Shown in pieces: positions 1 through 16,633 of a stretch of 16,633 nucleotides of DNA. How positions within the stretch are numbered: position 1 is the stretch's first letter; each line of letters starts with the position of its first letter. Origin of the DNA: Amoeboradix gromovi X-113 (taxonomy: Eukaryota > Fungi > Sanchytriomycota). Both the position numbers and the translations under genes were made by a program. Location of the stretch: NCBI GenBank assembly GCA_018985225.1, contig JADGIF010000158.1, positions 1 through 16,633 on the forward strand, read 5' to 3'. The notes below the pieces were generated by a model. It saw only the letters and a program-made list of their open reading frames with translations. It was not told where the DNA came from and made no database searches.

Positions 1-140
1 AAGAGAATAGCTGTACAGAATATTTATTTTTGAAATTTCGATACAAATTGTCTAGTCTAGTTTTTACAGAGCATGTCAAGATGTTCTTTAATTCACCTTA
101 AGGAGAAATTTTGAAACCAAATCTTTTTCATTTTTCTAAA

Positions 141-467
141 ATGATGATGCCACAACAATCCAACGATGCAGAAAAACAAAAGCAGCAACAACAACAAGCT
201 GAGCAGATTCAGGCAGTAATCCGAAGAGTTTTAACCAGAGAGGCATATGAGAGATTAAATAATGTTAAGTTAGTTAAACCTGAGAAAGCTCAAATGATTG
301 AGCATTATATATTTCAAATGGCTTCTAAACAGCCTATAATGCTTGGGGAAAAAGATATACTGAATCTTTTAGAACAGCCAGAGTTTAACGAAACAGCTAA
401 AGTTATAATCAAAAGAAACGTTGAATCTGATGATGAATGGGCTGCACTTGAAGGCGATGAATATTGA
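141..467 (+). CDS. PDCD5: PDCD5 / Sdd2-like dsDNA-binding protein
   Basis: Q-rich N-terminus then 'IRRVLTREAYERLNNVKLVKPEKAQMIEHYIFQMA...EKDILNLLEQ...IKR..SDDE', the typical PDCD5 pattern. First ATG at 141 (the ORF track starts at TTG 111). Confidence 0.9.
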   Translation: MMMPQQSNDAEKQKQQQQQAEQIQAVIRRVLTREAYERLNNVKLVKPEKAQMIEHYIFQMASKQPIMLGEKDILNLLEQPEFNETAKVIIKRNVESDDEWAALEGDEY

Positions 468-489
468 ATATTATATTAAAATAAATTTC

Positions 490-750
490 TATTTATAACT
501 TTTCCTCTTTAAAATTCCTGATTTACTGGAAAAATCCTCACATAGAAGTTCAAAACCCCAGTCAAATTTTTACAGTACTTGTTCGCACTTCCACTACTCT
601 GAGACGGGATTGATCATTGGATAACTTGCTCAAAGTGCATGTTCTTTGTTTGTACCTGTACTTCATTTTAGACCAGTTTCTGAGTATACTATTTTATTCA
701 GTTGAAAAAGTCCATTGTAGCGATATGGCTTATGGAATCACTATATATTC
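490..750 (-). ncRNA. Unclassified structured RNA element, copy A
   Basis: Minus-strand motifs ATAAGCCA (733-726), CAGAAACTGGTCTAAAATGAA (682-662), CAAAGAACA (648-640), TAGTGGAAG (596-588) and a 3' hairpin TTTTCC..TAAATCAGGAATTTTA..GGAAAA are colinear with copies B-D. Nested stems CTGGTC/GACTGG, TACAGGTAC/GTACTGTA, TGCACT/AGTGCG. Ends approximate. Confidence 0.6.
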
Positions 751-806
751 AGCTGAATTTACAGCTGTTTTAATTTGGATTGTTTTGAAACTAGCCGCTA
801 CATAAG

Positions 807-2221
807 ATGGAGGAAGTCAAAAATGTTATGTCCAAGCTTGTTGATAAAACCCCTATTAACGATAAGTTACTATCAAGACCACCATTTAGATATTTATACG
901 ATATGATTATAGAATTGAATCAGAAGTTCAACTGTTTCCAATTACCATCAATAGATCCAGATATAGTAACAAAAGAACAGAAATTATCGTTTTTGCAGTC
1001 TGTTATTGAACAAGTTGGACCAGGTGTTAATGCTAAAGCGTCTAAAATAGTCGCAGGTCTGGAAGTCGAGAATACCTGGGAATTATTAATTTTGATTTCC
1101 AAAAAAATCAACGAAAAGGTTTTAATAGACAAGGAGCTTGAGAAGCAACAGAAAAAGCAGGAAAAATCAAAGATACCGGAAAAAAATGTTGAGAAATCAA
1201 GAACCTCTCTAGCAGGCCCAGTACAAGATAAACCTATGAAAAAGAGTGGCTCTAAAGAAAAAAAAGAAAGGATAGAACCAAAAGAGATGAAGAGTCCCTA
1301 TACTAAGACCGCGGAAAAACCAGAACCCTCCAAAAAACCAGTTTCGAAATCAAAAGAAGAAAGTAGACGAGAAACCCAGCCTCTGGGTGAGAAAAACCTT
1401 AAAGTAGGTCTCAAGTCATCGGCTCCAAAGGAAAAGCCAGCTACTTCTATAAAGAAAACGAGTAGTAAGGAGCTAAAATCTCCTGAACAACCAGTCGCAT
1501 CATCATCTCCAAAGAAAAAAAAGTTGAGCAAGAATGAAAGCGAAGAGAACTTACAGCATCCAATCACTCGTAAGAAGTCGGAGGAATTTTCAAAAACAAA
1601 TGTCTTACAAACTGTGATTAACGCTACAAACATTGCAGTTGAAAACAAAGCACAGAGCTTTATCGACTCATCAAAGTACAAACAAACTCATTTAGTGTTT
1701 CACCTGTGTCTATTTTAAAAGACGAGAACCAAGAGCATCCTGACTTAAACTACTTAATGGAAATGACAAGCAACAGGTCTACTAAAAAAGAAGACATGCC
1801 GACTGCTATTGTACAATCGAAGTTATTAAAATCTATTGCGAGTACAGGATATAAGAATGAGACCGATAATCTAAAATTCAGTCCAAAATCACTAACAGAA
1901 TCTACTATTCAGGATTTTATTCAAAGTATCAGCAAAAACATACATCCACTAAGCGATATAATAGAATATTTGCCCGAGAATGTGGAAGCCATGTCAAGAG
2001 AGAACCTGAGCTGGGATCCTCTCATTGAAAAATATAAAATGGAGTATCTCGATGAGAAACAGGAAACAATGAAGCTTACACGCTCATCAACAAGGGAACA
2101 AAATGAGCTGAACTTAAGAATCAGAAAGGCTAGAGAAATGGTCAAGGTAGCTTATTATAACCTACATCATACGGAAGACATCGAACAAAAAATTATGAAT
2201 TCTATAGTAAATCCAGATTAG
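807..2221 (+). CDS. TRAF3IP1: IFT54 / TRAF3IP1 (MIP-T3) intraflagellar transport protein; exons 807-1675 and 1696-2221
   Basis: N-terminal CH-like domain 'KLLSRPPFRYLYD...KIVAGLEVENT', K/E-rich linker and C-terminal coiled coil 'IQSISKNIHPLSDIIEYLPENVEAM'. The two ORFs join in frame by removing a 20-nt GT-AG intron. Confidence 0.92.
1676..1695 (+). other. 20-nt spliceosomal intron (GTACAAACAAACTCATTTAG)
   Basis: GT..AG with CTCAT branch-like motif; removal restores the IFT54 frame (S-N-V-S-P-V-S-I-L-K). Confidence 0.85.
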
Positions 2222-2248
2222 TGATAACTATTAAGGACAGCATTTATT

Positions 2249-2896
2249 TTATAAAATATTCTCATATCTTTCAATTCCTTCTGCTAGTTTTGCACAGCTT
2301 AGAGCCGCAGAAAGTGGAAACTCAGACATACTTAATTTATAATCAGAAATATCTAAGCCATCAACTAAGTAAACATCATCGCCATGTGGAATGGCACCTA
2401 CAATGAAGCAAATATTCATATCTTCTCCTTCTTTAATCTCTTTCTCTTTCAGCTCGTTGAGAAATTCATCCACACGATGAATCTGTCCTTTATCAGACAA
2501 AACAACGTACCTAGTATTTGCAGGCATATGTCTAGTAATTGGATTCTTAACAATTCGCAAAAGAGTGTCATTTTGGGTGCTTTTTATTGACATTTTTTGT
2601 AATAATTGACACATTAATCCACAAAAACGTTTAAAGGTTCTAGGCAGTCTGGTTTTTTCATTAAGCTCAATTAGTTGATGGTCTTGAGTACTGATGTATA
2701 CTCTAAGTAGATTGGAATGGTTCAAAGGACTGTCCAGTAGCTGCAAAACAGAATGATGTAAAATGTCAGGCCTGCACGTAGCCTTCATTTGTGCTGATTG
2801 ATGATCATCCCAATTAAGTAGTTCCACTTTGCTGTATTTTAACTTAGATTTAACCTTTAATTCCAAATGTGCAGAATGAAGTAGAACATAGTACAT
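2249..2896 (-). CDS. EMG1: EMG1/NEP1 18S rRNA pseudouridine N1-methyltransferase (SPOUT family)
   Basis: 'LLNWDDH', 'RPDILHHSVLQLLDSPLN', 'RLPRTFKRFCGLMCQLL', 'VGAIPHG', 'SEFPLSAA' motifs. An in-frame TAA directly precedes the ATG. Confidence 0.96.
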   Translation of the reverse strand: MYYVLLHSAHLELKVKSKLKYSKVELLNWDDHQSAQMKATCRPDILHHSVLQLLDSPLNHSNLLRVYISTQDHQLIELNEKTRLPRTFKRFCGLMCQLLQKMSIKSTQNDTLLRIVKNPITRHMPANTRYVVLSDKGQIHRVDEFLNELKEKEIKEGEDMNICFIVGAIPHGDDVYLVDGLDISDYKLSMSEFPLSAALSCAKLAEGIERYENIL

Positions 2897-2984
2897 TTAA
2901 AAACGAGTTTGATCCTTGCATATCCTCTTTCCTAATTAAAATTCTTAACTACATCCAATAGAATTTGAAGCAACTTTTAAACAT

Positions 2985-3456
2985 TTCACGAATACCATTA
3001 CTCGATTATGTAAACCATTGTGTAAATCGTTGCCCATTTTTGTGTCGCACTCTGATTATTTCTCGTTAAATTCTACTTTACGAGAAAACCAAGAATTTCT
3101 GAAAAGAAACTGACAAAGCCAGACTACGTTAAGCCGGTTGCCCACGCTTCCACTAAGCTGGGCATAAAATAAACCGAGGTGCATCGTAGCGTGTGTTCTT
3201 TGCTGCCATAAGTCGTTTCATTTTAAGACCAGTTCTGCCTTCTGGGAGTAGTGGATAGTGTTACGTATCTCATTTTGATATCTAAATATGTGGCTTATTC
3301 TGGTAATGACGACTTGAGATGTTTGCATTAGATGAGAAAAAAGATATCAAGTTTTTATAAAACTAGAAACTCTGTAAAGAGAGTGCAATTTGGCATTAAG
3401 AAAAACATAGCCGCGATAAATGGTTTATTTAATTAGAGCCAAGAGCTGTTCGTAAT
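2985..3456 (-). ncRNA. Unclassified structured RNA element, copy B (core about 3059-3298)
   Basis: Minus-strand ATAAGCCA (3298-3291), CAGAACTGGTCTTAAAATGAA (3237-3217), CAAAGAACA (3202-3194), TAGTGGAAG (3155-3147), GAAATTCTTGGTTTTCTCGTAAAGTAGAATTTAACGAGAAA (3099-3059). Enclosed by a long imperfect outer stem (GCACTCT/AGAGTGC, TAAACCATT/AATGGTTTA). Confidence 0.65.
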
Positions 3457-3624
3457 TTCACATTTTCTTACAAAAATCTAATCATGTGCATTCCTTTAAA
3501 GTAGTCGTCAGATTTAAAGCATATATTTTTCAAGGCTCAATTAAATTGTTTAACTACGACGGCGATTTTACTTTATTTCGCTGCTTGAAATCATCCTAGT
3601 TTCATTCTAACTTTGACATTTACA

Positions 3625-3987
3625 ATGGAAATTATTCGAAATCAGATCAGAAAAATCACCCAGAAGTCACTTTTCATTCCTGTCACTTATTATATAAGCA
3701 GTCCTCATCCTATTTCAAATTTACGATTTCTTACTTTTTGTCCTATGCGTGAATTGACTAAAAACGAAAAGGCATATTGTGATGAGTTATCCGCGCTGTA
3801 CGAATTCCATCATAAATTTTGGCTTCATCACCTGCGTTTCCTTGAAAATTTAAAGTATCCTAAAGAATCGCTAATAAACAAAGAATATTATATAGTAGCT
3901 TCATCGACACATTTACATATTTATTATAAGGAGTTCTGGATCAAAATGTCCAAAATAGTTTGGCTTCGAATAAAAGCGTTTTTTTAA
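3625..3987 (+). CDS. COA8: COA8/APOPT1-like cytochrome c oxidase assembly factor
   Basis: 'YISSPHPISNLR...FHHKFW...H..YYKEFW' resembles the APOPT1 pattern (WIGPPDxxSNLR...FW...HxxYNxEW). First ATG at 3625. Confidence 0.7.
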   Translation: MEIIRNQIRKITQKSLFIPVTYYISSPHPISNLRFLTFCPMRELTKNEKAYCDELSALYEFHHKFWLHHLRFLENLKYPKESLINKEYYIVASSTHLHIYYKEFWIKMSKIVWLRIKAFF

Positions 3988-4973
3988 TTTTTGAATTTCT
4001 TAGTTGGTCTTTCCTCTTGTCTAGACAATCTCCAATTTTTAGTTTGCGTATTTTGTGAGAAGTCAATCTTTATTCGGCGCTCATCTATTATGACATTGTT
4101 CATTTTAACATAAGCTTGCTCACATGCCTGCTTCGTGTTGAACTCCATAAAGCAATACCCTTTGGAAATACCCTGTTTGTCTCTTACGATTTTACACTGC
4201 AGAATCTCGCCAAATCTGCCAAACAACAGCTTTAGATCATCCTCTACAGTTATAGGATTCAGCTTGCAGATAAACAGATTGTTTTCAGCTGGCTTTAAGT
4301 TTGAAAATGGAATATCGCCTAAAATTTCCAAAGTTTTAGCCGACTTTTCAGCATTTTCTACTTCTTGCTCATCTTCGTCTAGAATTTCAATATCGTCGTA
4401 ACTAAATGTAATAGCCTTCTGAACATGTTCCGGAAGAGTTGGACTGCTTGGATAGGTTAAACTATCTTCATATGGGTCATCCAATATAACTGTGTGCAGG
4501 ATATAAACGCTAGTCATGGGAGAGCCATTTTTAGTTGGAATTTTGGCAATTTTGTCAACAACCTCTTGTCCCTCAGCAACGACTCCGAAAGGGACATGAG
4601 TGCCATCAAAGCTACAAGGATTATCTAAGCATATAAAAAACTGAGAGGTTATGTGCGCTTTTCGAAGTTTGGTATGTGGCGACGAGAAGCTGACTGTATA
4701 TCGATCATGTTTGACCTTGGGAACATTTACAGTCATGAATTTTTTATCTGATTCATCGTTGTAATACTCAAAACAGCAACCGCCGCTTCCATCGTTATTG
4801 GGATCTCCTGTTTGAATCCAATTCCTTTCAACGCTGTAGAAACTGTTGAAATGAAATTTTTTAAATTTGCAAAGCTTGATAAAATTAATCCCGGGTCTTG
4901 ACTTTTCGAGATCAGTAGAAAGGTACAAGTCTATAACAAAATTTCCAACGGTTGTTTCTATCAGCACACTCAT
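3984..4973 (-). CDS. PPIL4: PPIL4 cyclophilin-RRM protein
   Basis: Canonical start 'MSVLIETTVGNFVIDL', 'QTGDP', 'ILHTVILDDPYED' and RRM 'PAENNLFICKLNPIT...IIDERRIKIDFSQ'. True ATG is 4973, not the longer ORF start. Confidence 0.95.
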   Translation of the reverse strand: MSVLIETTVGNFVIDLYLSTDLEKSRPGINFIKLCKFKKFHFNSFYSVERNWIQTGDPNNDGSGGCCFEYYNDESDKKFMTVNVPKVKHDRYTVSFSSPHTKLRKAHITSQFFICLDNPCSFDGTHVPFGVVAEGQEVVDKIAKIPTKNGSPMTSVYILHTVILDDPYEDSLTYPSSPTLPEHVQKAITFSYDDIEILDEDEQEVENAEKSAKTLEILGDIPFSNLKPAENNLFICKLNPITVEDDLKLLFGRFGEILQCKIVRDKQGISKGYCFMEFNTKQACEQAYVKMNNVIIDERRIKIDFSQNTQTKNWRLSRQEERPTKKFKN

Positions 4974-5010
4974 CAGCAAACAAATTTGTTTAAAAGGAGA
5001 ACACACAAAA

Positions 5011-5712
5011 ATGTCATTGCATACAAAACCATTTCTTTTAAAAGCTGTTTTGAGAGACTTCGTCAGCAACGCTCCGAAAAAGATTTTAGAATTGCCTTCT
5101 CAGATATACGGTTTGCCAGCTAGAAGAGATATCCTTTGGTCGTGTATGGTTTGGCAACGTGATTTGCAGAGACAAGGTACTTCTTCTACAAAGGGCAGAG
5201 GGGAAGTAAAAGGTTCTACTCGTAAGATGAGACCGCAAAAGAAAACTGGTAAAGCTCGGGCTGGAAATAAGCGAGCCCCACATTGGAGAACAGGTGGAAT
5301 TGTACATGGACCCAAACCTAGAATCCATGCTACCAGACTACCCTTGAAAGTTAGAGAACTAGGTTTAAAGGTATTGATGTCTCAGAAATTAAAAAACGAC
5401 GAGCTGGTGTTCGTAGATGAGTTCTCCAAATTAAATGCGAGTAAGTTGACTGAATCATTGTCCTTGCATTACCCACCATTACACAAAGATGCTGTATTTT
5501 CTGCTTTAAAAACCGAAGGCAATTATGCTAGCACTTTGTTTTTAACTGGTGTTGAGTCTGGAAAGGCTGCTGAATTGCAAAAAATTAATATTCCAAACGT
5601 TAAAGTTCTTCATACTTCTTCAGTAAACATCCTCGATATGTTGGATCATCATTATCTTGTGATGGACTCACTCGCACGGGAGTTGCTAACAAAAAGGTTA
5701 CTAAGAGAATAA
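5011..5712 (+). CDS. MRPL4: Mitochondrial ribosomal protein uL4m
   Basis: 'RRDIL...WQRD..RQGTSSTKGRGEVKGSTRKMRPQKKTGKARAG..RAPHWRTGGIVHGPKPR'. First ATG at 5011. Confidence 0.95.
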   Translation: MSLHTKPFLLKAVLRDFVSNAPKKILELPSQIYGLPARRDILWSCMVWQRDLQRQGTSSTKGRGEVKGSTRKMRPQKKTGKARAGNKRAPHWRTGGIVHGPKPRIHATRLPLKVRELGLKVLMSQKLKNDELVFVDEFSKLNASKLTESLSLHYPPLHKDAVFSALKTEGNYASTLFLTGVESGKAAELQKINIPNVKVLHTSSVNILDMLDHHYLVMDSLARELLTKRLLRE

Positions 5713-5724
5713 AAATGATTTATT

Positions 5725-7686
5725 TTAATTTATTTTAGCCAAAGTTAAAAATGATTTACAATCCTTTGTCTGTGTGTAGGTTTTAAACATATCTGGTGTG
5801 ACCACCATTGTTCCTTTCTTTCTGTTTATCTGGTCCACATTAATCATCAATAATTCTTTCAATTGTTTCTTCTTTCTCTTTATTTCTGCTTTCGATACAC
5901 AATCGGTACTCTTTGCAACCTCAATGTCCAATGCTTCTTCATACTCTTGTTCTTCTTTGAGTTGCGCGTTTGATAGCCTTTTATCATGCTCTTCTTTTTC
6001 AATACATCTAGCCAACTCAAGCCTAATCCTTAAATGATCGCAAATACTTGGCTCCATTCTAATCATCTTGGATTGTTTAATTTCTAAGGTTTTCAACATT
6101 AAATTGAATTTTTTTAGTTCACTAGGTAAACATAGAGTAATTGCAATCCCAATTCTATCATATCTTGCTGTTCTTCCACTTCTATGCACATAGGTATCTC
6201 CATTTCTGGGTACGTCATAGTGTATGACACACTCAGTATCCACTATATCTAATCCACGCGCAGCTACGTCACTTGCAACGAGAATGCAATTTTTAGTGGA
6301 TGAGAATATTTCTAAAACAGAAATTCGTTGTGACATTTTCATATCACCGCGAATAGTTTTGACGGTTTTAGACGGGAATAGTAGCCTAAGCAAAGCGGAT
6401 AATCTACGAACGCCATCCAAAGAATTCATGAATATTGCGGTTTTACCAGTAAAGGTATGATGCAAGTAATAAACCGCCAAGTCCTTTTGAACCATTGTGG
6501 AACAGTCAATGTGGTGATGAGAGATCTTAGGATTCCTTTTAATGTTGATATTACACAGAAATGGTTTAAACGGAATGATTTCCAACAACTTTGCTTCATT
6601 GGACTCATTTGGTGTTGCTGAGGAGCAAGATATATAAAAGGATTCGCTCCAATTCTTGCTTGAAATTAGTTTGATTCTACGAAGACTAGTACCGATATGG
6701 TCAATGCCATCTAAACCACGCAGGTTTTCATACTCATCCAACGCAAGCCATCTGCAGTAATTGAACACTTTAAACAAGACTCGTGTATGAACAGGTTCCA
6801 TGGATTCAATCTTAGCAGTCAGATCATCAGTATCGTCAAGAACCATAAATGGTAATTGCGAAGCGAGGTCACCCAATCTCCCTGGAGATGCTACTACGAC
6901 AACTTTGAGAGATTCCGACGCATTTCTTAACAAGCGGTCTTGCTTCTCTTGTGACATTCCACCTTGCAACTTTATCACTTTCCACTCTTTGAATTGCATT
7001 GTGATTTCAGATAAGACATCGAAAATTTGATTAACAAGTTCTCTAGTAGGTGCCAAAATGACAGCCGATGAAAAAGATTGGATGTTGTTGAGACTATTAA
7101 TCAACGGAAGTAAAAATGCCAATGTTTTACCAGACCCGGTTTGAGCAGCTATCATAACTTGGCTCGGATGTCTTTTATTCTTACCGTACCATGAAAAAAC
7201 CTGCTTTTGTATATCAGCAGGTTTAAAATCCTGCATTGAAATCGGAAGCCTACAGCACCAGCCCGGGAAGTTATCGTTTACGACAAATCTATCAGATACA
7301 GAAACAGAATCTTTGGTAGAATTCGGGTCCTTTTCTGGTTCTTCTGCTATTAAAGTTTCGTCTTGAAAAGGATCATCACTAAAAATTCCACTATCCCTAA
7401 CATCAATTAAATTAGTTTCTAAAGCTTCATCGCCCTGTACAGATTTACCAATGTTATTATCGTGTGGTTCTACAGAGTCAGCTCCTTCAAATGGCTTCGT
7501 TTCTTCCTTTGAAGCTAACCCTGATACAACACTCAAATCCATAGGATCATAATCTTCTAATACTTCTACACTTAGTACACCCTCACAGCTAGCTCCAGTA
7601 TCCAGCGCTCTCCATTTTTGATTATTTAGTTTTCGCTTTTTGTTGATATTATTTTTAGTTGTGGAAATGCGAGATGACTGCTTCAT
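5725..7686 (-). CDS. DDX24: DEAD-box RNA helicase, DDX24/MAK5-like, with deviant motif II
   Basis: AQTGSGKT, PTREL, SPGRL, SAT, DVAARGLD, YVHRSGRTAR (typical of DDX24/Mak5); N-terminal 'W...LSVEVLEDY'. Confidence 0.85.
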   Translation of the reverse strand: MKQSSRISTTKNNINKKRKLNNQKWRALDTGASCEGVLSVEVLEDYDPMDLSVVSGLASKEETKPFEGADSVEPHDNNIGKSVQGDEALETNLIDVRDSGIFSDDPFQDETLIAEEPEKDPNSTKDSVSVSDRFVVNDNFPGWCCRLPISMQDFKPADIQKQVFSWYGKNKRHPSQVMIAAQTGSGKTLAFLLPLINSLNNIQSFSSAVILAPTRELVNQIFDVLSEITMQFKEWKVIKLQGGMSQEKQDRLLRNASESLKVVVVASPGRLGDLASQLPFMVLDDTDDLTAKIESMEPVHTRVLFKVFNYCRWLALDEYENLRGLDGIDHIGTSLRRIKLISSKNWSESFYISCSSATPNESNEAKLLEIIPFKPFLCNINIKRNPKISHHHIDCSTMVQKDLAVYYLHHTFTGKTAIFMNSLDGVRRLSALLRLLFPSKTVKTIRGDMKMSQRISVLEIFSSTKNCILVASDVAARGLDIVDTECVIHYDVPRNGDTYVHRSGRTARYDRIGIAITLCLPSELKKFNLMLKTLEIKQSKMIRMEPSICDHLRIRLELARCIEKEEHDKRLSNAQLKEEQEYEEALDIEVAKSTDCVSKAEIKRKKKQLKELLMINVDQINRKKGTMVVTPDMFKTYTQTKDCKSFLTLAKIN

Positions 7687-7895
7687 GGAGAGTCCCTTCT
7701 AAATTCTAAGCAACAAATGGGACATGCTCTATGAAAGTAGATAAAAGGTCAGGTAAAAGCCTTTGAGGAAAGAAAAAGAGAATTGGGTAATTCAGTGTCC
7801 AACAACCCAGTAAAAGGTAGCCAAAATTACATCACAGATAACTTATGAGACCACTAAACTAACATTCAAATGATAGCCAGCGACAGCAAACTCAA

Positions 7896-8378
7896 CAACA
7901 GTTATAAATGCAGTAAAACATAGTTCCAATACGTTGCCATCTACCAAACAAGCAAAGAGAATGAACGTGATAAGAAAGTGATTAAACATAAACATAGCAG
8001 TTACTTCGACAACATGAAAGGTTATCTGGTATTGCAACCAAGAACTAGCGTAAGTACGGCAACAATGTTCATGACACATAATGTTTACCAAGTGACGACG
8101 AGGGCCCTTATTGACAGAGATATTAACAGCATGTAGTTTCACTAGTATAAACCACTTATTGCGGTTACTTGGCGTTTTACTTTCACTTAATTCTTTTTAC
8201 AGGATACTCTCAATGGCATAAAACTAGTTCATAAATAGAATCACAAGATGCCTTTCAACGCAAGGAAAGAGGTTTCTATACCATTTACAAGAAGCTCAAA
8301 AGTCGCATTGCTGCTATTCGGAAATTCATGATTTTCTTGGAAACCAGGACTTTCAACGAGGAGCGAGCTGTTGCTTAG
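7896..8378 (+). ncRNA. Unclassified structured RNA element, copy C (expanded)
   Basis: 3' block GAAATTCATGATTTTCTTGGAAACCAGGACTTTCAACGAG (8321-8360) matches copies B and D. AACATGAA (8011-8018) and CCAAGAAC (8038-8045) are motif variants. Stems ATAGCAGT/GCTGCTAT, CGAC/GTCG, TGGTAT/ATACCA, GCGT/ACGC, CAACAGTT/AGCTGTTG. Confidence 0.55.
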
Positions 8379-8477
8379 GTGATAAAATACGGAAAAGTTC
8401 AGCCCTTCATGATATTTGCCTTAAAGTCTCTCAAGTTCTTCAGCGCGTCTCTGTATACTTATGTTAACATGATTTAT

Positions 8478-9500
8478 TCAATTCACGTTATCAAATATTT
8501 TAGGGTCAAAAGATGTTCCCTCAACAATTGTGTCTTGTTTTTTCCATGCTTCCAATTGGTCCTTATCTAATGCTGCCTCGAGCTTCTCTTGCTCCCATTT
8601 GTCATATTCTTCTTTGTGCTCCCATCTTTCAGAAAAGTCCTCATCTTCAAATTGTGTGTAGTATTGATCAGAGAACAGACAATCAACCCCAGAAACTTTA
8701 AATATTTGCCGAAGCAGTCTTTGTATTGAAAGCGGAGATTTTATAGAGTATGGAATATAACTAATAATACTGTAATTTTCGATGATTTCACATAGTTGTT
8801 TTGATAAATTTTGAAATTTGAAAAAGATATTATTTTCTTGACTTTGAATATCTGGAAGCATGTTGCAGAGATCCCTAGGATACAGGTAATCCCTAAGTTT
8901 TCCTTGAAGTCGATTAGTATCAAGCAAATCCATTTTGCTCAGTACATTAATTGTAGGGCAACCAATATTCAGCATTGAGCCCAAAGAGGTTAGACTCATT
9001 GCAATAAAGTGATGAAAATCAGGTAAATAAGTGCTGTCGCTTACTGATACAACCACCAGTCTCATCATTTTTTCCAAGTCACTCATTATGCTTCTAGTTG
9101 ATTCATGATGCATATATAATTCAACTTGTCCTGGAAAATCGAATACAATAAATACAACATTTTCCTCATCCTTTGAAAGGGTTAAACCTTGAATATGCGC
9201 ATCAATACTAGAAGTTAGCCAGGAGATATTTCTGCCGATCTCATCCATACATTTTACCATTGAGCCATTTGGTCCTAACCCATCAATCCTTTCAGACATA
9301 ATGAAATCTCGAATATTAATATCGCAACTTGAATACGGGTGCGCAGGGTCGAGATTTACTAATAAACTGTTCAAATTTGTCTGTTGAAAATAAAGCGCCA
9401 ATGAGTTACACAGCGATGACTTCCCTGCTCCCGGTTGTCCTATGCATGCGATTCCAACTATATGCAAGTTGTTTGGCTTTGAAGGATTTTTTGCTGTCAT
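8478..9500 (-). CDS. GPN2: GPN-loop GTPase 2
   Basis: GQPGAGKS P-loop, VNLDPA, GLGPNG, FDFPGQVELYMHH, INVLSKMDL. Confidence 0.93.
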   Translation of the reverse strand: MTAKNPSKPNNLHIVGIACIGQPGAGKSSLCNSLALYFQQTNLNSLLVNLDPAHPYSSCDINIRDFIMSERIDGLGPNGSMVKCMDEIGRNISWLTSSIDAHIQGLTLSKDEENVVFIVFDFPGQVELYMHHESTRSIMSDLEKMMRLVVVSVSDSTYLPDFHHFIAMSLTSLGSMLNIGCPTINVLSKMDLLDTNRLQGKLRDYLYPRDLCNMLPDIQSQENNIFFKFQNLSKQLCEIIENYSIISYIPYSIKSPLSIQRLLRQIFKVSGVDCLFSDQYYTQFEDEDFSERWEHKEEYDKWEQEKLEAALDKDQLEAWKKQDTIVEGTSFDPKIFDNVN

Positions 9501-9565
9501 TGAATTTGGATCGAGGAGATTTTAAGTTGTACACACTTTGAGTACTAGACAGATTTCAAGAAAAG

Positions 9566-10684
9566 TCATTCGAATATATTTATTTTGGTGTCTGTTATGT
9601 GCTCTATTTGCTTTTTTGACTTATATTTTGACCCCAAAATGATAACATCTTCTATTCCGCTATTTTGTATATCTTCGATACTGCTCTTTAAGTTTCTCGG
9701 TTTGTGCACAAAGCCTAAGACATCACCATTATTGGTTTGTAGATATGATTCTATAGAGTTTTTAGCATCCTTGAAATGGCAGCCGAGATCAATTACTACG
9801 GCAGTTACAGGAGCGACACTTTTCGGGAAGTATTTATGCGACAGGCTCAGAATTGAAAGAAGTCTGGTTACGCCTATCCCATAGCATCCCATAATAGGAG
9901 ATTTCATCTCTAGTTTATTGGTAAAAAGCTTAGTAAAATAATCTCCAATTAGAAATGTGTGCGCTGCCTCTATAGCGTTCATTTTCGCACCGTCTTTCAC
10001 CAAGTTGTAACCATCCTCGTTAATATAAACCTCTGCTTCGCCTTCCGGATGGAGTATCAAGTATTCATGGCTAAACAACCCTTTCATATCGCTTGGATCT
10101 GATTCCACACGAATAAATGGTAGTTCCAACCTCTCAAATATTTTCTGATACGACTCTGATACTCGTTTATATGACAGCGCTGCAGCATCAGTATTTAAAT
10201 CAAAGGAATACAAATCGTTCATTAAAAATTGCCGAGTTCTTAAGAGTTCCTTACGACAACGCAACTCATTTCTGAACTTCCACTGCATTTGGTAGTAATA
10301 CAACGGAAGTTGATTTGTGGAAGTGTTATAAGACAGCAATTGAGATATATCTTCTTCTGAAGTAGGTGGTAAAATATACTCCCCATCATCCAAATGAATA
10401 AACTCCTTTTTGTAAATTTCAGACCTTTGCGAAACATCCCAATGCGCTTTTTTAGATACCAGTGGAAGCGCAATCTCTAAAGCATTAATCCCTTCTAGTT
10501 CCATCTTTATGATATTTTTAATCTTTTCCAATAACATCATGCCTAAAGGAAGAAAAGTAAAATACCCTGCAGAATACTTTGAAATTATTCCCATCTTCAC
10601 TAACCTATTTGGGTCAGAATCCTTTCTTTGCCCTAAAAGTTTTGTAAAATCCAACGTGCGACATCTTGATTTTGCACGAATCAT
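9566..10684 (-). CDS. PARS2: Mitochondrial (bacterial-type) prolyl-tRNA synthetase, compact, lacking the INS editing domain
   Basis: 'G.FTFLPLG', 'LPPTSEE', 'LPLYYYQMQWKFRNELR...LLRTRQFLMNDLYSFD', 'SHEY', 'MGCYGIGVTRL'. Confidence 0.92.
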   Translation of the reverse strand: MIRAKSRCRTLDFTKLLGQRKDSDPNRLVKMGIISKYSAGYFTFLPLGMMLLEKIKNIIKMELEGINALEIALPLVSKKAHWDVSQRSEIYKKEFIHLDDGEYILPPTSEEDISQLLSYNTSTNQLPLYYYQMQWKFRNELRCRKELLRTRQFLMNDLYSFDLNTDAAALSYKRVSESYQKIFERLELPFIRVESDPSDMKGLFSHEYLILHPEGEAEVYINEDGYNLVKDGAKMNAIEAAHTFLIGDYFTKLFTNKLEMKSPIMGCYGIGVTRLLSILSLSHKYFPKSVAPVTAVVIDLGCHFKDAKNSIESYLQTNNGDVLGFVHKPRNLKSSIEDIQNSGIEDVIILGSKYKSKKQIEHITDTKINIFE

Positions 10685-10708
10685 TGTGTCAATCTCCGTT
10701 GAAACCTG

Positions 10709-11376
10709 ATGACTACTTTATTCGAGCTGATGAAAACAACAAACTTTGCTTGGTTCTTAGGACATTTTGGTACAGTTCTTTCAACTGTTGGTTACTTTGT
10801 GTTTGGGTGGAACACATACTACCAGACTTTATTTCTTAGTTGTGTGAGTTATGGAATAACAATGTTATATCCTCCGATTCAGGCTGTTAACATCGATTAC
10901 TTACTTCTTTGCGTAAGTTGTTACATGTATGAGCCTTTCTGGCCGGTCTTGATACCATTAGCTGGCTATTCTTTATTGCATACATGCACTTACTTTAGCA
11001 ATACCATTATAGCTAAAGTGTATCCGCATATGACTCAGCTGCAATCGCCCATGGACAACCTGGTGAAGAACCAGGATAGCTTACTAAGATATATCTCGTA
11101 TTTTGTAATTAACTTAGTATCTGGGAAATTGTAGGAATGGGATCTCATATAATTTTCGGTTTAGTGATGATGAAAGTGTCGTTTTTTCTGTTTGTCGGTT
11201 ATATTGTGTTTATTAGACGCAAGTACCAGAATTCTGGTCTTACAAGACAAGCTTTCTCCCTCATTCATATGCAATTAACTAAACTTTTCGAAAAGTATCC
11301 TTCCGCTTTAGGTATCTACTTAAAGTTCAGCACTGTCCTCACCCAAATGGCACCTGTTGAAGCTAAGGCTAGTTAA
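10709..11376 (+). CDS. TMEM33: TMEM33/POM33/PER33 family membrane protein; exons 10709-11097 and 11118-11376
   Basis: 'FAWFLGH', 'SYGI', 'NIDYLLL', 'YSLLHTCTY', 'YIVFIRRKY..S..TRQAF'. The two ORFs join through a 20-nt intron giving 'YISIWEIVG'. Confidence 0.88.
11098..11117 (+). other. 20-nt spliceosomal intron (GTATTTTGTAATTAACTTAG)
   Basis: GT..AG with TTAAC branch motif; removal joins ORF 10709 to the frame of ORF 11137. Confidence 0.87.
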
Positions 11377-11417
11377 TAAACGATCAATTCATTTTTAATA
11401 TTTATAAAACAGGGGCC

Positions 11418-12245
11418 ATGAACTTTAGCGACGATGAGTTACCACAGCAGCAAGTAAGTCCTTTATTAATCACAGAGGCAGATCTGCGGAACGTTCCCAC
11501 ACAGGAATTACCAATTGACTCTGATGGGGAAGACGAAGCAAACATTGTATTTAATCCATTTATTCCGAGATACGCAAATGACGATCTATATTGCAGAGTC
11601 CCTATACCAATACAAGAGCATGTCTTAATGAAAGTTGTTAGAGGCAGGGAGGTCAATCAGCCTATTTATGATCTTTTTCTTGAAAGAACAGAGGAACTAT
11701 ATCTATTACATTCTAAGAAGCAATTTGGCACCCAAACATACCTTATATACACGGATGCTAAAGCTGATAAATACCTCGGAAAGGTAAGTAGTAACTTCCT
11801 CGGAACTATGTTTACAATAACTGACCATAATGGAGTAGAGCTAGCGGTTGTATTATATAAACCAAATATACTAGGATTTAAAGGACCGAGATGTATGACT
11901 ATTCTTCTACCTGCAATAAGCAAACAGGGAAAGATGAACATACTAAGATCAAGTTTGTATGACATGTACAAGTCTAATTCCAAGGAAATTATAGTTCTGC
12001 AGAACAAAACACCACTATGGAATGAGGAAACAAATTCTTACGTTTTGAACTTCAACGGTAGAGTAACAGTAGCAAGCGTTAAAAATTTTCAAGTAACTCC
12101 AAACCAGGATTTGGATTACATTTTACTACAATTTGGGAGAGTAGCAGCCAACCGCTTTACCCTGGATTGCAGGTATCCCATTTCAGTTCTCCAGGCATTT
12201 GGAATATCTTTGACAAGTTTTGAAAGTAAAATTGCCTGTGAATAA
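11418..12245 (+). CDS. Tubby-like protein (TULP)
   Basis: 'SNFLGT', 'NILGFKGPRCM', 'LQNKTPLWNEETNSYVLNFNGRVTVASVKNFQ', 'LQFGRV', C-terminal 'SKIACE'. Confidence 0.96.
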   Translation: MNFSDDELPQQQVSPLLITEADLRNVPTQELPIDSDGEDEANIVFNPFIPRYANDDLYCRVPIPIQEHVLMKVVRGREVNQPIYDLFLERTEELYLLHSKKQFGTQTYLIYTDAKADKYLGKVSSNFLGTMFTITDHNGVELAVVLYKPNILGFKGPRCMTILLPAISKQGKMNILRSSLYDMYKSNSKEIIVLQNKTPLWNEETNSYVLNFNGRVTVASVKNFQVTPNQDLDYILLQFGRVAANRFTLDCRYPISVLQAFGISLTSFESKIACE

Positions 12246-12380
12246 ATTATGATGATATATTAATAAATCAATGTTTATACGAATAAAGCGTCTCTATGGA
12301 ACCAAATGGTTTACTTGTCAGTTTAGTAATGTATCATGTGATAAACATACTTTAAAATTTGAAAAAAGTCAAGCCACCTC

Positions 12381-15300
12381 ATGGAAACTGTAGCTGACAG
12401 ACTATTTATTCTTACTGATTTTGGAAATAAAGCTATACGTGTTTTATATTCCCATGTTAAACTGTATAATTTCATATCAAATCCAACTGAGCAAGATTCC
12501 TTATTTGGAGACGCAAGTATTCCGATGAAAACAGGATTATCGCTCTTATTGGACGCTAATTACCAACCGCTATACAAAGCACTTCTTAAAAAGTTTCCAG
12601 ATATTCGTGATATACCGAAGAGCGCCACTGCTGTATTGGAACAAAACCAGAAGACCTTTATTGATGGACTTCAAAGTATGTATAATTCTATGTCAATATT
12701 TCTTCAGTTCCAGAATGATGCGCTCGATATTCTTAAGATTGCGGATAAAATCCAATACCTTAATTCCGAAATAACACCGGATTTATGCATGATGATTTTG
12801 GATGTTGTTAAGCAGATCGTTTTCGGCCAGCAGCTGATTTGCTCACTAGGCGAGCGCAGAAAGATATTAGTAAGTGCATATGCCAAAGCATATTTCCTTG
12901 AGAATGGAATTAATGAACCGCTCTTTCGTACTTTGGCAGATTTATGTATGAATGTTGAAAAGGTTCAGCAGTATTTGATAGAAATCTTCCAACCAGTTAA
13001 TAATATAGTTCACATGGCTTTGAATGCACTTCAGTTAGATTATACAAGTGGTGCTGGAATCTCTGCTGATACGCTAAGAAAAACAAAGTCTCTCAGGTTC
13101 AGTGGTAGTTTTAAGATGGGAAACATGAGCGAACCAATATACGACGATAAAACCTTTCGAATGCTTTATTACATAGAACGTTTAACTGAGAATATCATTT
13201 CTGCTGCGTTAGCTTGTCCCAATGACCTTGTAAAGGAGAACGCGTCGCATGTCTGCGGCTTTGCAGTTACAGTTACTGATAAGCTGTATCTATCTGGCGA
13301 CACCTTTTTAGAACTATTTTCTGAATTTGAACAGATAGCTAAAATTTCAAACAAGTCTACCAAAACTGTCAAAGTCATTAACGATTCAATTCAAAATGTG
13401 GCAAGTCGCACCTCTTTACACCTAGACAGAAGAGAAGCCATCTCAAAACTATTAGCAGACTCTATTTTAACTGTGAAATCTGATAACGGTTTTTTAGCAA
13501 CTCGATTGCCCACCATTTTAAGTCTCTTGAGTCTGGGATATCATGAGCTGGTATATTACTTCAAGCAATTTGAGCGGCTCACCCCTCGGCGTACAAAAAC
13601 AGCCAATTCCCCTGGATTTAGTTGGACTAGCATCCAATTGCTGCACAATTTGGTTCAATTATACGAATTAATAGTTGATAACATGAGCTTAATTAATCAG
13701 TATTATATAGAGATGCTTAGAACTACTTATGCTAGTGAATTAAACGAATATCTAAATATCATTCAAACTTCATCTGAACCTGAAGTAATTAAAAACATGT
13801 GGAACGATATTCACTTGTCCTTAAAAACACTTAAATCGCCAGATTCCAAGTCTTTGTACAGTATTAGAATGACCTGGCTAAGGTTGCAGGTATATTTTGC
13901 AACTCAGTCACCACCTTCCAACCAATCGACTCAGTCTATAATAGCAAAGGTTATGAATGAGATCTGCTTGAGATCTCGATTTATCGATAATTTAAGCAGT
14001 GAATTGGATTTGATATGTCCGCTGCATAATTTGTTCTACTTTAGATATAGCTTGATGGATCACATTGTTCAGTTCACTACAATGCCGATATATGACGATA
14101 TTCATGTGCAAACCAGCAGGTCAATTATGAGTTGTGTTATGGTTGCTAAATATTTTACGAGCCTAACCAGCTTTGAAAGTAAAACAAGCAAGCAGCATGA
14201 GAGGTTACAAAACTTTACAAAATTCTATGTAGACACTGCCACTCATTTATTGATAGATGCTGCTACATTCAATATGCATTCACTTAACTTGGAATTTGCC
14301 AGACTATATTTACTAAGTCATTCTTTTGGTCAACAATCGTTATTAACAGAGGAAGAAAAGAGAGTAATGGTTATGCCGGGGTTTGAATCAATGCTGAACC
14401 ATAAGAACGCAAGTTTGCTGAAATGGGCATCACAGCAGTTTATTCTTAATGGTCTAGTCAGTTCATTTAAGAACCCATTTTTAATTTCGAACACATTGTT
14501 TACTCCAATGATAGACTTTATTAAGAGTTATAACAAAATCGTAGTAGGTGTGCTACGCACTAGTATTCTTGAATCACCTAATAGTGCAAGTGGAAAAGAC
14601 AGTGGAAATAGTAGCCCATATAACATATATGCAAAAGACAGTCCAATAATGCAACAAGCTACTTTTATGATTAAGCGTCCTACCTTGTTTTTAACAGGAT
14701 TGATGGGATATTTCGAAAACTTAAAAAAGATTAGCGTAGCTAGTGAGTATGATTACATGTTCGGAGTGTCACAGCTACTGAGAGATCAGAGCAATTTGAT
14801 AACTGCAAATTTAGAACTTAATCAAGTAGAACTTAAAGGTAAAAATAATAAAAGGAAAGTAGATACCGTGGATAAGTTATTGGTCACTCAGCTAATAAAC
14901 TGGCTCATGGAGGTTATAGGAAGCAAGACTGTAGCTCAGAACTTTGGAATATCACCAATCCGTAAGTCTTTAGAAAGTTACGGATCCGATCCGTTTCCAC
15001 TACACCATTTTATATGCTACAAAGAGTTTTATGCTATTTCAGAGTGCGTTGGGCCTAATGCTAGAATTATATTAAGAGAGAAAATATACAGTGTAGCCAA
15101 GAACATATTTGATGAGTTATTTGTAGCCATTAAACCGGTATACGATGCAATTGAATCAGAAAAAGGAGAAAAAAGTGATGCTAAAGTAATGGAATTAATA
15201 GGAAAACAAAGATTGGCACCAGAATACAATGACTGGATGCTTCAATTTGGTACTTTGGGAATGCTATTTGAATTAGAGGATTTATTAAGCGAAGCATTCA

Positions 15301-15916
15301 GCGATTCAATGGAAGAGAACTCCAGCTATCTAAAGGCAGTAGTAGAACATGGTGATTTATCATCACATCCCAAGCTACCTGAGCTTGTAGAGATGTTGTC
15401 TAGCAGCGGAATCAAAAGCACCTCGAGTAAAAGTAAGTTGCAAATGGCAGCATTGGATATAAAGAGATTTACAACTACGCTGGCTATTTTTATGACTAGC
15501 GTTGCCTTAGATGAAACCTTGATGTATTACCCATTCCATGGAAGTACTTTATTATTAACATAGCGTTCACTAGAAATATCCAATCCATTCCGTATGCAAT
15601 TGCAATATTACTAAGAGATTTGTCCATAACTATTGACTCGCAGAAATGGGAGGCGATTTTCGAAGAGACCTGCCAGAGCTTTCTTGAACAATGCTGCTTA
15701 TTACTGATGAAACTAGAAAACGACAAGAGGGCCAAAAAAGTAAGTGCTGTGCTCATATTGTTGGAGAAGTTTACTCAATTAACTTTTGCAAAGTTTATCC
15801 ACATATTAAGACGAAAAACATGTTTACCTGCTAAACAGTACTACGTCACCAGTGCATGCCACTATATAGCAAAGGAGTTTTATTTCAGGAATGGTATAGA
15901 AGAAGAAAAGGATTGA
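12381..15916 (+). CDS. NCKAP1: NCKAP1/Nap1/Hem WAVE regulatory complex subunit; exons 12381-15543 and 15564-15916
   Basis: 'VADRLFILTDFG', 'KALLKKFP', 'IRMTWLRLQVY', 'L.NLFYF', 'PGFES', 'IKRPT', 'AISECVGP'; about 1170 aa after removal of a 20-nt intron. Confidence 0.88.
15544..15563 (+). other. 20-nt spliceosomal intron (GTACTTTATTATTAACATAG)
   Basis: GT..AG with TTAAC branch motif; it contains the apparent TAG stop, and removal gives 'HGTFTRNIQSIPYAI' in frame with ORF 15620. Confidence 0.88.
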
Positions 15917-16065
15917 TGCAATAAATAGAATGTTTTCAAAAAACCTGTTGGCTGTCCTAATGGAAATCATTTATTGTGATTCATGAATTCTATCACCCGA
16001 AAACACTTCATGCTATAATTTTTAATCGAACAAAAACAAGTTATTCTCTTTTCCCATCTATGATA

Positions 16066-16341
16066 AGTAGCAACTCGATTTTTTTCTTGAATAAATCATT
16101 TATGGCGATTTTTTATGCATTTTGGACAGAAATAAGTGCAAAATGTCATTTGAGAGTAGACAAAGACCATTTTCAAAGATGTACATATACTTGAAACATA
16201 TTCATTCGTACTCCGCCCCACCTTAGAGCATTAGAATCGTGCGTAAATGCTGCAAGCGAGCGACTTATTTTTGTCATTCTCTCTATCGAAATTTTTGATT
16301 TTCTTGTAATTCAGCATTTTAAACGAGATTGGTTTGCTACT
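16066..16341 (+). ncRNA. Unclassified structured RNA element, copy D
   Basis: ATAAATCA (16091-98), CAGAAA-6nt-CAAAATG-15nt-CAAAGACCA (same spacing as copy A), 13-bp stem GACAGAAATAAGT/ACTTATTTTTGTC (16125-37/16263-75), GAAATTTTTGATTTTCTTGTAATTCAGCATTTTAAACGAGA (16288-16328), closing stem AGTAGCAA/TTGCTACT. Confidence 0.62.
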
Positions 16342-16633
16342 AGGAATACACTACATATCTACTTAACTAGTTCTGATTTTTGGGACAATCTGAAAAGAGA
16401 CTGTTTAGTTTTTTAGTGTCTCAAACTGTCAAAACAAAGCATTTGGGACACCAAATATAAAAACTAGACTAACTCGTTTTTAAAGGAGGTGCACCATACG
16501 GAGGAATTGCTATCATTAATAAAAGATCTTCTATTATACCAATTTTCTTTCATTATTTTCAATCCCCTCTTCAAAATAAAAGTAGAAGACCCTGCATCTC
16601 GTTCAAATATATGAGGTCTTTGAGCATCTAAGC

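Follow-up and report, generated by a model that had tools for sequence, protein, structure and literature searches.

Results

The window analysed here, the whole 16,633-nucleotide (nt) stretch of contig JADGIF010000158.1 from the tiny algal-parasitic sanchytrid fungus Amoeboradix gromovi X-113, is gene-dense eukaryotic DNA whose large intergenic spacers hold four copies (A to D) of one dispersed element. An initial annotation had described this family as an unrecognised structured RNA. Our follow-up indicates instead that the copies are probably the decayed right ends of transposons carrying a Fanzor2/TnpB nuclease. The spacers measure 339 nt (A), 716 nt (B) and 791 nt (C), while that of copy D, which follows NCKAP1, spans at least about 410 nt. 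As annotated, A and B lie on the minus strand and C and D on the plus strand:

505..733, minus strand: copy A right-end region; motifs at 733, 669, 648, 596, 539 and 510; hairpin core partly broken
3062..3460, minus strand: copy B right-end region, longer form; boxes at 3428 and 3298; motifs at 3224, 3202, 3155, 3099 and 3067
8147..8360, plus strand: copy C right-end region, starting with the 20-nt box and ending in ...AACGAG; predicted omegaRNA scaffold
8147, 8220, 8242, 8260, 8321 and 8355, plus strand: copy C motifs
8316..8363, plus strand: copy C terminal block, conserved and with a hairpin; the element ends at 8360-8363
15962..16327, plus strand: copy D right-end region, longer form like B; boxes at 15962 and 16091; motifs at 16140, 16161, 16229, 16288 and 16322

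Leave-one-out searches with nhmmer, in which a model built from three copies finds the fourth, returned E values of 3e-8 to 7e-6 (A 7e-6, B 4e-8, C 6e-7, D 3e-8). All six pairs of copies also aligned better than shuffles (z 3.4-8.0), a comparison that had been proposed as a check on the family. The motif series is colinear in all four copies, C included when it is placed at 8147-8360, with near-constant spacings (21-22 nt between motifs m2 and m3, 56-61 nt between m4 and m5) and a variable arm of 18-68 nt. The 3' blocks quoted in the initial annotation are present at 3099-3061 (B, minus), 8321-8361 (C, plus) and 16288-16328 (D, plus). The similarity is unevenly distributed: the signal between copies comes mostly from the last 45-48 nt, whose identity is 76-79% while that of the upstream part is 59-68%, and once the terminus is removed significance is clear for the A-B pair only (z 5.6; A-D was matched by 6 of 500 shuffles and C-A by 16 of 500). 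Copy C requires no 200-nt apical expansion, the extra upstream DNA being the relic of a Fanzor open reading frame (ORF).

A 20-nt box that lies in copy C just past the end of this ORF (8147, plus) recurs in B (3428 and 3298, minus) and in D (15962 and 16091, plus). Across B, C and D there are three matches with at most 4 mismatches and none in shuffles, and we regard the box as a candidate 5' anchor of the scaffold. B and D represent a longer form in which it occurs twice, 129-130 nt apart, and their first units align with each other (z 7.4). The signal for a 130-nt internal duplication in these two copies was traced to overlapping segments; without overlap, B1-B2 was equalled by 79 of 500 shuffles, D1-D2 by 15 and B1-D2 by 2, and support for a true duplication is weak.

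The DNA immediately upstream of the copy C right end carries the remains of a nuclease gene, which we detected with frameshift- and decay-aware scans whose profiles drew first on 24 and later on 106 Fanzor2/TnpB proteins encoded by contigs of giant viruses, phages and bacteria. These proteins are of Fanzor2-like type, carrying Pfam PF07282 and matching 9B0L best in the PDB. The protein-coding features considered are:

7755..8137, plus strand: copy C Fanzor2/TnpB C-terminal relic (RuvC-II region, zinc-finger remnants, RuvC-III), with stops and frameshifts
near 7985-8010, plus strand: copy C YTSKTC-like motif, inside the relic
8110..8130, plus strand: copy C codons for I-D-R-D-I-N-S, a RuvC-III motif
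736..780, minus strand: copy A, possible remnant of RuvC-III, lying directly upstream of the box and in the register that copy C predicts
3461..3610, minus strand: copy B, DNA upstream of the right end that may be decayed zinc-finger coding sequence; not significant (3/120 to 40/120 shuffles, by profile)

The copy C relic reached z 6.6 (0/200 shuffles; opposite strand z 0.3-1.7), z 4.0-4.9 with a shorter profile and z 3.6 (0/60 shuffles) with the 106-protein profile, and its score of 27.0 exceeded those of all 32 host-gene tiles (maximum 23.0). The IDRDINS codons are the sole motif of their kind in the four spacers (0/4000 shuffles), and the C-terminal pattern [TS][TS]xx-C4 zinc finger-x(5,50)-RD occurs in decayed form in copy C only. 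A plain hmmsearch over six frames found nothing, because of the frameshifts. All Fanzor frames are broken, the RuvC-I region is missing and no piece gave a Pfam or NCBIfam TnpB match; the copies are relics, not working genes. Only shuffle-tested registers were relied on, by-eye motif matching having given several incompatible ones, and the register that equates m1 with YTSK and m3 with DRD scored below decoys. Fanzor coding on the opposite strand was likewise rejected (summed p 0.74-0.98), as were host genes split by 20-nt introns, for which Pfam, NCBIfam, Atlas and PDB offered no support and whose supposed DNA the relatives lack.

The order in copy C is ORF end, scaffold region, element end: the motif series begins 17 nt past the IDRDINS codons and runs for about 215 nt to ...AACGAG; the element end lies 248 nt past the first aspartate of RuvC-III. 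Alignment of the first unit of copy B with C begins at the D-I-N-S codons (z 4.5, 1/500 shuffles). In copy A the segment at 736..780 was reached by 0-3 of 150 and 2-9 of 200 shuffles in single-register tests; it also resembles the empty spacer of the relative L001 and may be old host spacer. A, B and D are linked to C by the DNA that they share; the protein signal of their own is weak in A and not significant in B and D.

For comparison we used contigs of two uncultured sanchytrids from ENA metagenomes (L001, and L004 with L005), in which the genes follow the same order as in the window, between PDCD5 and TMEM33 in L001 and between IFT54 and Tubby in L004. Their spacers along the syntenic stretch (window positions 111-16633) mostly lack these elements, and about 33 kb of the two relatives contains no copy. 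The insertion comparison covers sites A, B and C, D having no orthologous site. The spacer at site A measures 29 nt in L001 against 339 nt in the window and that at site C 37 or 58 nt in the relatives against 791 nt, while site B measures 138 nt in L001 against 716 nt and holds an unrelated insert in L004. Because the relatives' spacers are short or unrelated at all three sites, the copies are insertions, and lineage-specific ones.

At site B, L004 (9156-9695, equivalent to L005 8074-8613) has a different spacer, of 670 nt, with a 179-residue ORF that carries a weakly matching transposase-like helix-turn-helix (PF13384/PF13518, E about 0.005), for which a homologue search found none. It is an independent insertion into the same spacer. 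A 21-nt match between the end of copy A and this insert is probably due to chance: it consists of common codons, the pattern matched unrelated coding genes, and terminal models gave E values of at least 0.06.

The initial annotation had anticipated further genomic copies, and the terminus does recur on many other contigs of the sample. When sample contigs were placed on positions 2850-8500, 33 were recovered, 25 of which lie on it only in part; the surplus contigs stack on 8320-8363 and 3078-3120 and then continue into unlike flanks, and at least 8 others match the copy C terminal block at 80% or more before diverging after 8363. The family has a sharp repeated end at ...AACGAG (the stacking shows a recurring end and yields no copy number). 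One contig joins 3098 to 3416, that is, the first box region to the terminal block, and is a shorter, miniature derivative lacking 317 nt. Beyond the ends, the flanks differ among all four copies. No inverted copy of the right end, as a terminal inverted repeat (TIR) would require, occurs in any spacer, and by eye no target-site duplication (TSD) is evident in the flanks, a weak test since left ends may be lost. If the omegaRNA model discussed below holds, these flanks would be the guide positions:

484..504, minus strand: flank past the copy A end
3041..3061, minus strand: flank past the copy B end
8364..8384, plus strand: flank past the copy C end
16328..16348, plus strand: flank past the copy D end

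The copies had been said to match no known RNA, and this holds: the best Rfam 15 score in any spacer was 21.8 bits against a gathering threshold of 60, there was no tRNA, and known RNAs were rejected as their identity. The structural claims fared less well in covariation and folding tests, all of which draw on four decayed copies. Whole copies fold no better than shuffles (z +0.05 for A, -0.91 for B, +0.38 for C and -0.25 for D), and the same goes for the terminal pieces (z -1.1 to +0.6) and for windows slid along the copies. Pairing in the terminal hairpin reaches 85%, more than in any slid control, and the hairpin's changes are G-U wobbles only, with no two-sided change and three core pairs broken in A. 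The proposal that pairing is kept although the stems differ is, on these counts, mostly unsupported. Its suggestive part is a central helix between the segments after CAAAGA and after GGAA (or AGAA), which forms in all four copies with differing sequences, comes first of the 105 segment pairs compared (p 0.0017, or about 0.18 after correction; the D anchor was shifted by hand) and is also recovered by RNAalifold. Indels that are not multiples of three, earlier taken as a sign of selection on RNA, are expected in any dead copy. It is plausible that the ancestral sequence folded, and a structured RNA is the probable origin of the region.

Genomic setting

The host genes of the window, and the short spliceosomal introns (GTA...TAG) observed in three of them, are:

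host genes, first part: PDCD5, IFT54/TRAF3IP1, EMG1, COA8, a cyclophilin-RRM protein and ribosomal L4
host genes, second part: a DEAD-box helicase, a GPN GTPase, a class II tRNA synthetase, TMEM33, Tubby and NCKAP1
1676-1695: 20-nt intron in IFT54
11098-11117: 20-nt intron in TMEM33
15544-15563: 20-nt intron in NCKAP1

EMG1 shares 80% identity with its Sanchytrium tribonematis counterpart. L001 carries a phosphorylase-kinase-like gene (4229-7696) between the helicase and L4, a place where neither the window nor L004 has it. Past copy D, the segment 16360-16500 folds locally at z -2.8 to -3.0, and the DNA at 16360-16633 includes an open frame (16473-16628) that may correspond to the start of VPS16, although Pfam and PDB gave no match. 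Two sanchytrid genomes are in print, of 10.5 and 11.2 Mb (PMC8371127).

Discussion

The reading that we consider probable is that the four copies are decayed right ends of Fanzor2/TnpB transposons. It is because copy C adjoins a significant Fanzor2/TnpB relic that the right end of a DNA transposon, together with an omegaRNA, is indicated. Of what the initial annotation concluded, the non-autonomous mobile element stands, given the insertions and the recurring terminus, whereas an unrecognised non-coding RNA (ncRNA) gene family, RNA-mediated movement and a ribozyme are not supported. The copies would be dead remnants, 5'-truncated or internally deleted, of a DNA transposon that spread in the sanchytrid genome, the surviving piece comprising the last nuclease codons, a non-coding stretch of 215-370 nt and a terminal hairpin ending in ...AACGAG. 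By analogy with ApmFz2 and IS607 TnpB, the parent element may have transcribed its right-end stretch as an omegaRNA scaffold, with read-through into the flank supplying a guide by which Fanzor would then have cut element-free sites. Shortened copies could have been mobilised in trans, in the manner of IS607 elements, and have decayed afterwards; they are presumably inert today. The broken pairs of copy A and the lack of folding excess fit such decay, and the terminus would be better conserved than the body because it was shared among subfamilies, as both transposase site and RNA 3' end, rather than through selection on each copy.

The closest known parallel is ApmFz2 (ApmFNuc) of Acanthamoeba polyphaga mimivirus (PDB 9B0L), in which the 200 nt between the ORF and the right end are conserved and yield a guide-bearing RNA (PMC10530073), and whose scaffold, covering -205 to 0, includes long stem-loops that are dispensable (PMC11832414). 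The window copies share with it a C-terminus of TnpB type (in decayed form in copy C), with a YTSKTC-like motif, a zinc finger and DRDxN, after which some 200 nt of conserved non-coding DNA lead to a sharp right end and then a variable flank, with 248 nt from RuvC-III to the end; the variable arm fits the same layout. Neither has TIRs or TSDs, which IS607-type Fanzor2 elements lack (PMC3627910). They differ from ApmFz2 in that the ORF is dead in all four copies, that no serine-recombinase gene was seen and no pseudoknot found, that they end in ...AACGAG, with no fixed GG crossover established, and that they have no sequence similarity to the other Fanzor2 right ends tested. The Spu-1 ghosts of Spizellomyces punctatus, which belong to Fanzor1 (PMC10432273), resemble the window copies in being numerous and dispersed in a zoosporic fungus with an omegaRNA-bearing right end and no nuclease. 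The ghosts have 30-nt TIRs, a 75-nt scaffold, strong conservation and demonstrated expression (PMC10432273), whereas the window copies, known from DNA alone, have no TIR, a longer region, heavy decay and a Fanzor2-like relic. Old, 5'-truncated Fanzor families present in many copies, with 3' ends in excess, are also on record as CRe-1/2/3 of Chlamydomonas and CMe-1A of Cyanidioschyzon (PMC3627910). These are Fanzor1 elements, the CRe ones Helitron-linked with TSDs and the others unclassified (PMC3627910), and in the window copies neither a TSD nor a Helitron end was found.

Several results weigh against a Fanzor2 right end. An entropy-weighted, flatter default profile gave the copy C relic only z 0.8-1.8, so that the result depends on profile sharpness, and the profile settings were tuned over several runs. 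B and D yielded no significant protein signal of their own in the Fanzor profile scans, and the motif region itself weakly scores as RuvC-II coding sequence. We found no intact Fanzor, transposase or left end: for an intact parent, a search of representatives returned repeat-like junk, and viral contigs, plasmids and phages gave nothing. The pseudoknot typical of Fanzor2 omegaRNAs, in which about the last 5 nt of the scaffold pair with an upstream loop, was not recovered, the end showing no conserved pairing with upstream segments among 105 pairs in four decayed copies. The right ends are also unlike the DNA that lies downstream of the nuclease at 106 other Fanzor2/TnpB loci. A profile of 33 serine-recombinase TnpA proteins likewise detected none in any spacer (best 2/30 shuffles), though the gene may have been deleted. 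Since a TnpA relic, a left end, a pseudoknot and likeness to other Fanzor2 ends were not found, IS607 membership is not established; copy C matches a Fanzor2-type profile, the scans having covered that type only, and a relic allows no tree.

A different anatomy, which we hold to be unlikely, would make the motif region itself decayed Fanzor coding sequence from RuvC-II to YTSKTC, so that the supposed loops are conserved codons, the terminal block encodes an E-x-Y-T-S-K-T-C-x-x-C-G motif and copy C comprises two tandem relics; the anatomy would change and the origin would not. In that register copy A reaches z 2.9-3.8 over 685-522 (about 1 in 90 shuffles), anchored sums over the four copies choose the same columns across profiles (0-1/45 decoys with the 24-protein profile), and the 44 nt common to other contigs approximate the length of the YTSKTC protein motif. 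The 106-protein profile, however, weakens the signal (A 3/60, anchored sums 6-12/45 or worse), and in the alignment no copy has cysteine codons at the places that the zinc finger requires, C and D have a stop in common there, and differences within the block have no clear third-position bias. It also needs a second relic that begins exactly where the first ORF ends in C. Under any anatomy, a Fanzor origin seems to us very likely.

Nor do we favour the idea that the copies are live, stand-alone omegaRNA loci maintained by selection, each using its own flank to guide a Fanzor made elsewhere. S. punctatus does have expressed ghost loci whose scaffolds function in editing assays (PMC10432273), and the conserved motif spacings, the one helix kept with differing sequences and a terminus better conserved than the body could be taken in the same sense. 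Bodies that are 59-68% identical, the broken hairpin of A, the lack of folding excess and of two-sided changes in the terminal hairpin, the failure to find an intact Fanzor, and the occurrence of this stretch in a single sequencing run, of DNA and not RNA, make this very unlikely. We are equally doubtful of a selected, expressed Fanzor2 omegaRNA repertoire, very dense in a reduced 10-Mb fungal genome, with a scaffold that may come from a duplicated piece of nuclease coding sequence. Still less probable is a Fanzor-independent host ncRNA family or ribozyme-like retroelement, to which the relic beside C would be a coincidence in a relic-rich genome. The absence of an Rfam match, the conserved motif order and the lack of protein signal in B and D would suit it, but the family is missing at the orthologous sites and in 33 kb of the relatives' DNA, the homology between B and C starts inside the RuvC-III codons, no catalytic core of a known ribozyme matches in Rfam, and there is no TSD.

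Taken alone, the four copies are ordinary dead transposon ends, and they illustrate that omegaRNA relics can mimic an unknown ncRNA family. The kind of element is already known, although the literature searched contained no report of Fanzor in Sanchytriomycota. If decayed Fanzor2/TnpB right ends are indeed what the spacers hold, Fanzor debris would make up most of the large intergenic DNA of a very compact fungal genome. Right ends so numerous and diverged would lend themselves well to working out a Fanzor2 omegaRNA fold from covariation, and any intact parent would represent a new compact RNA-guided nuclease.

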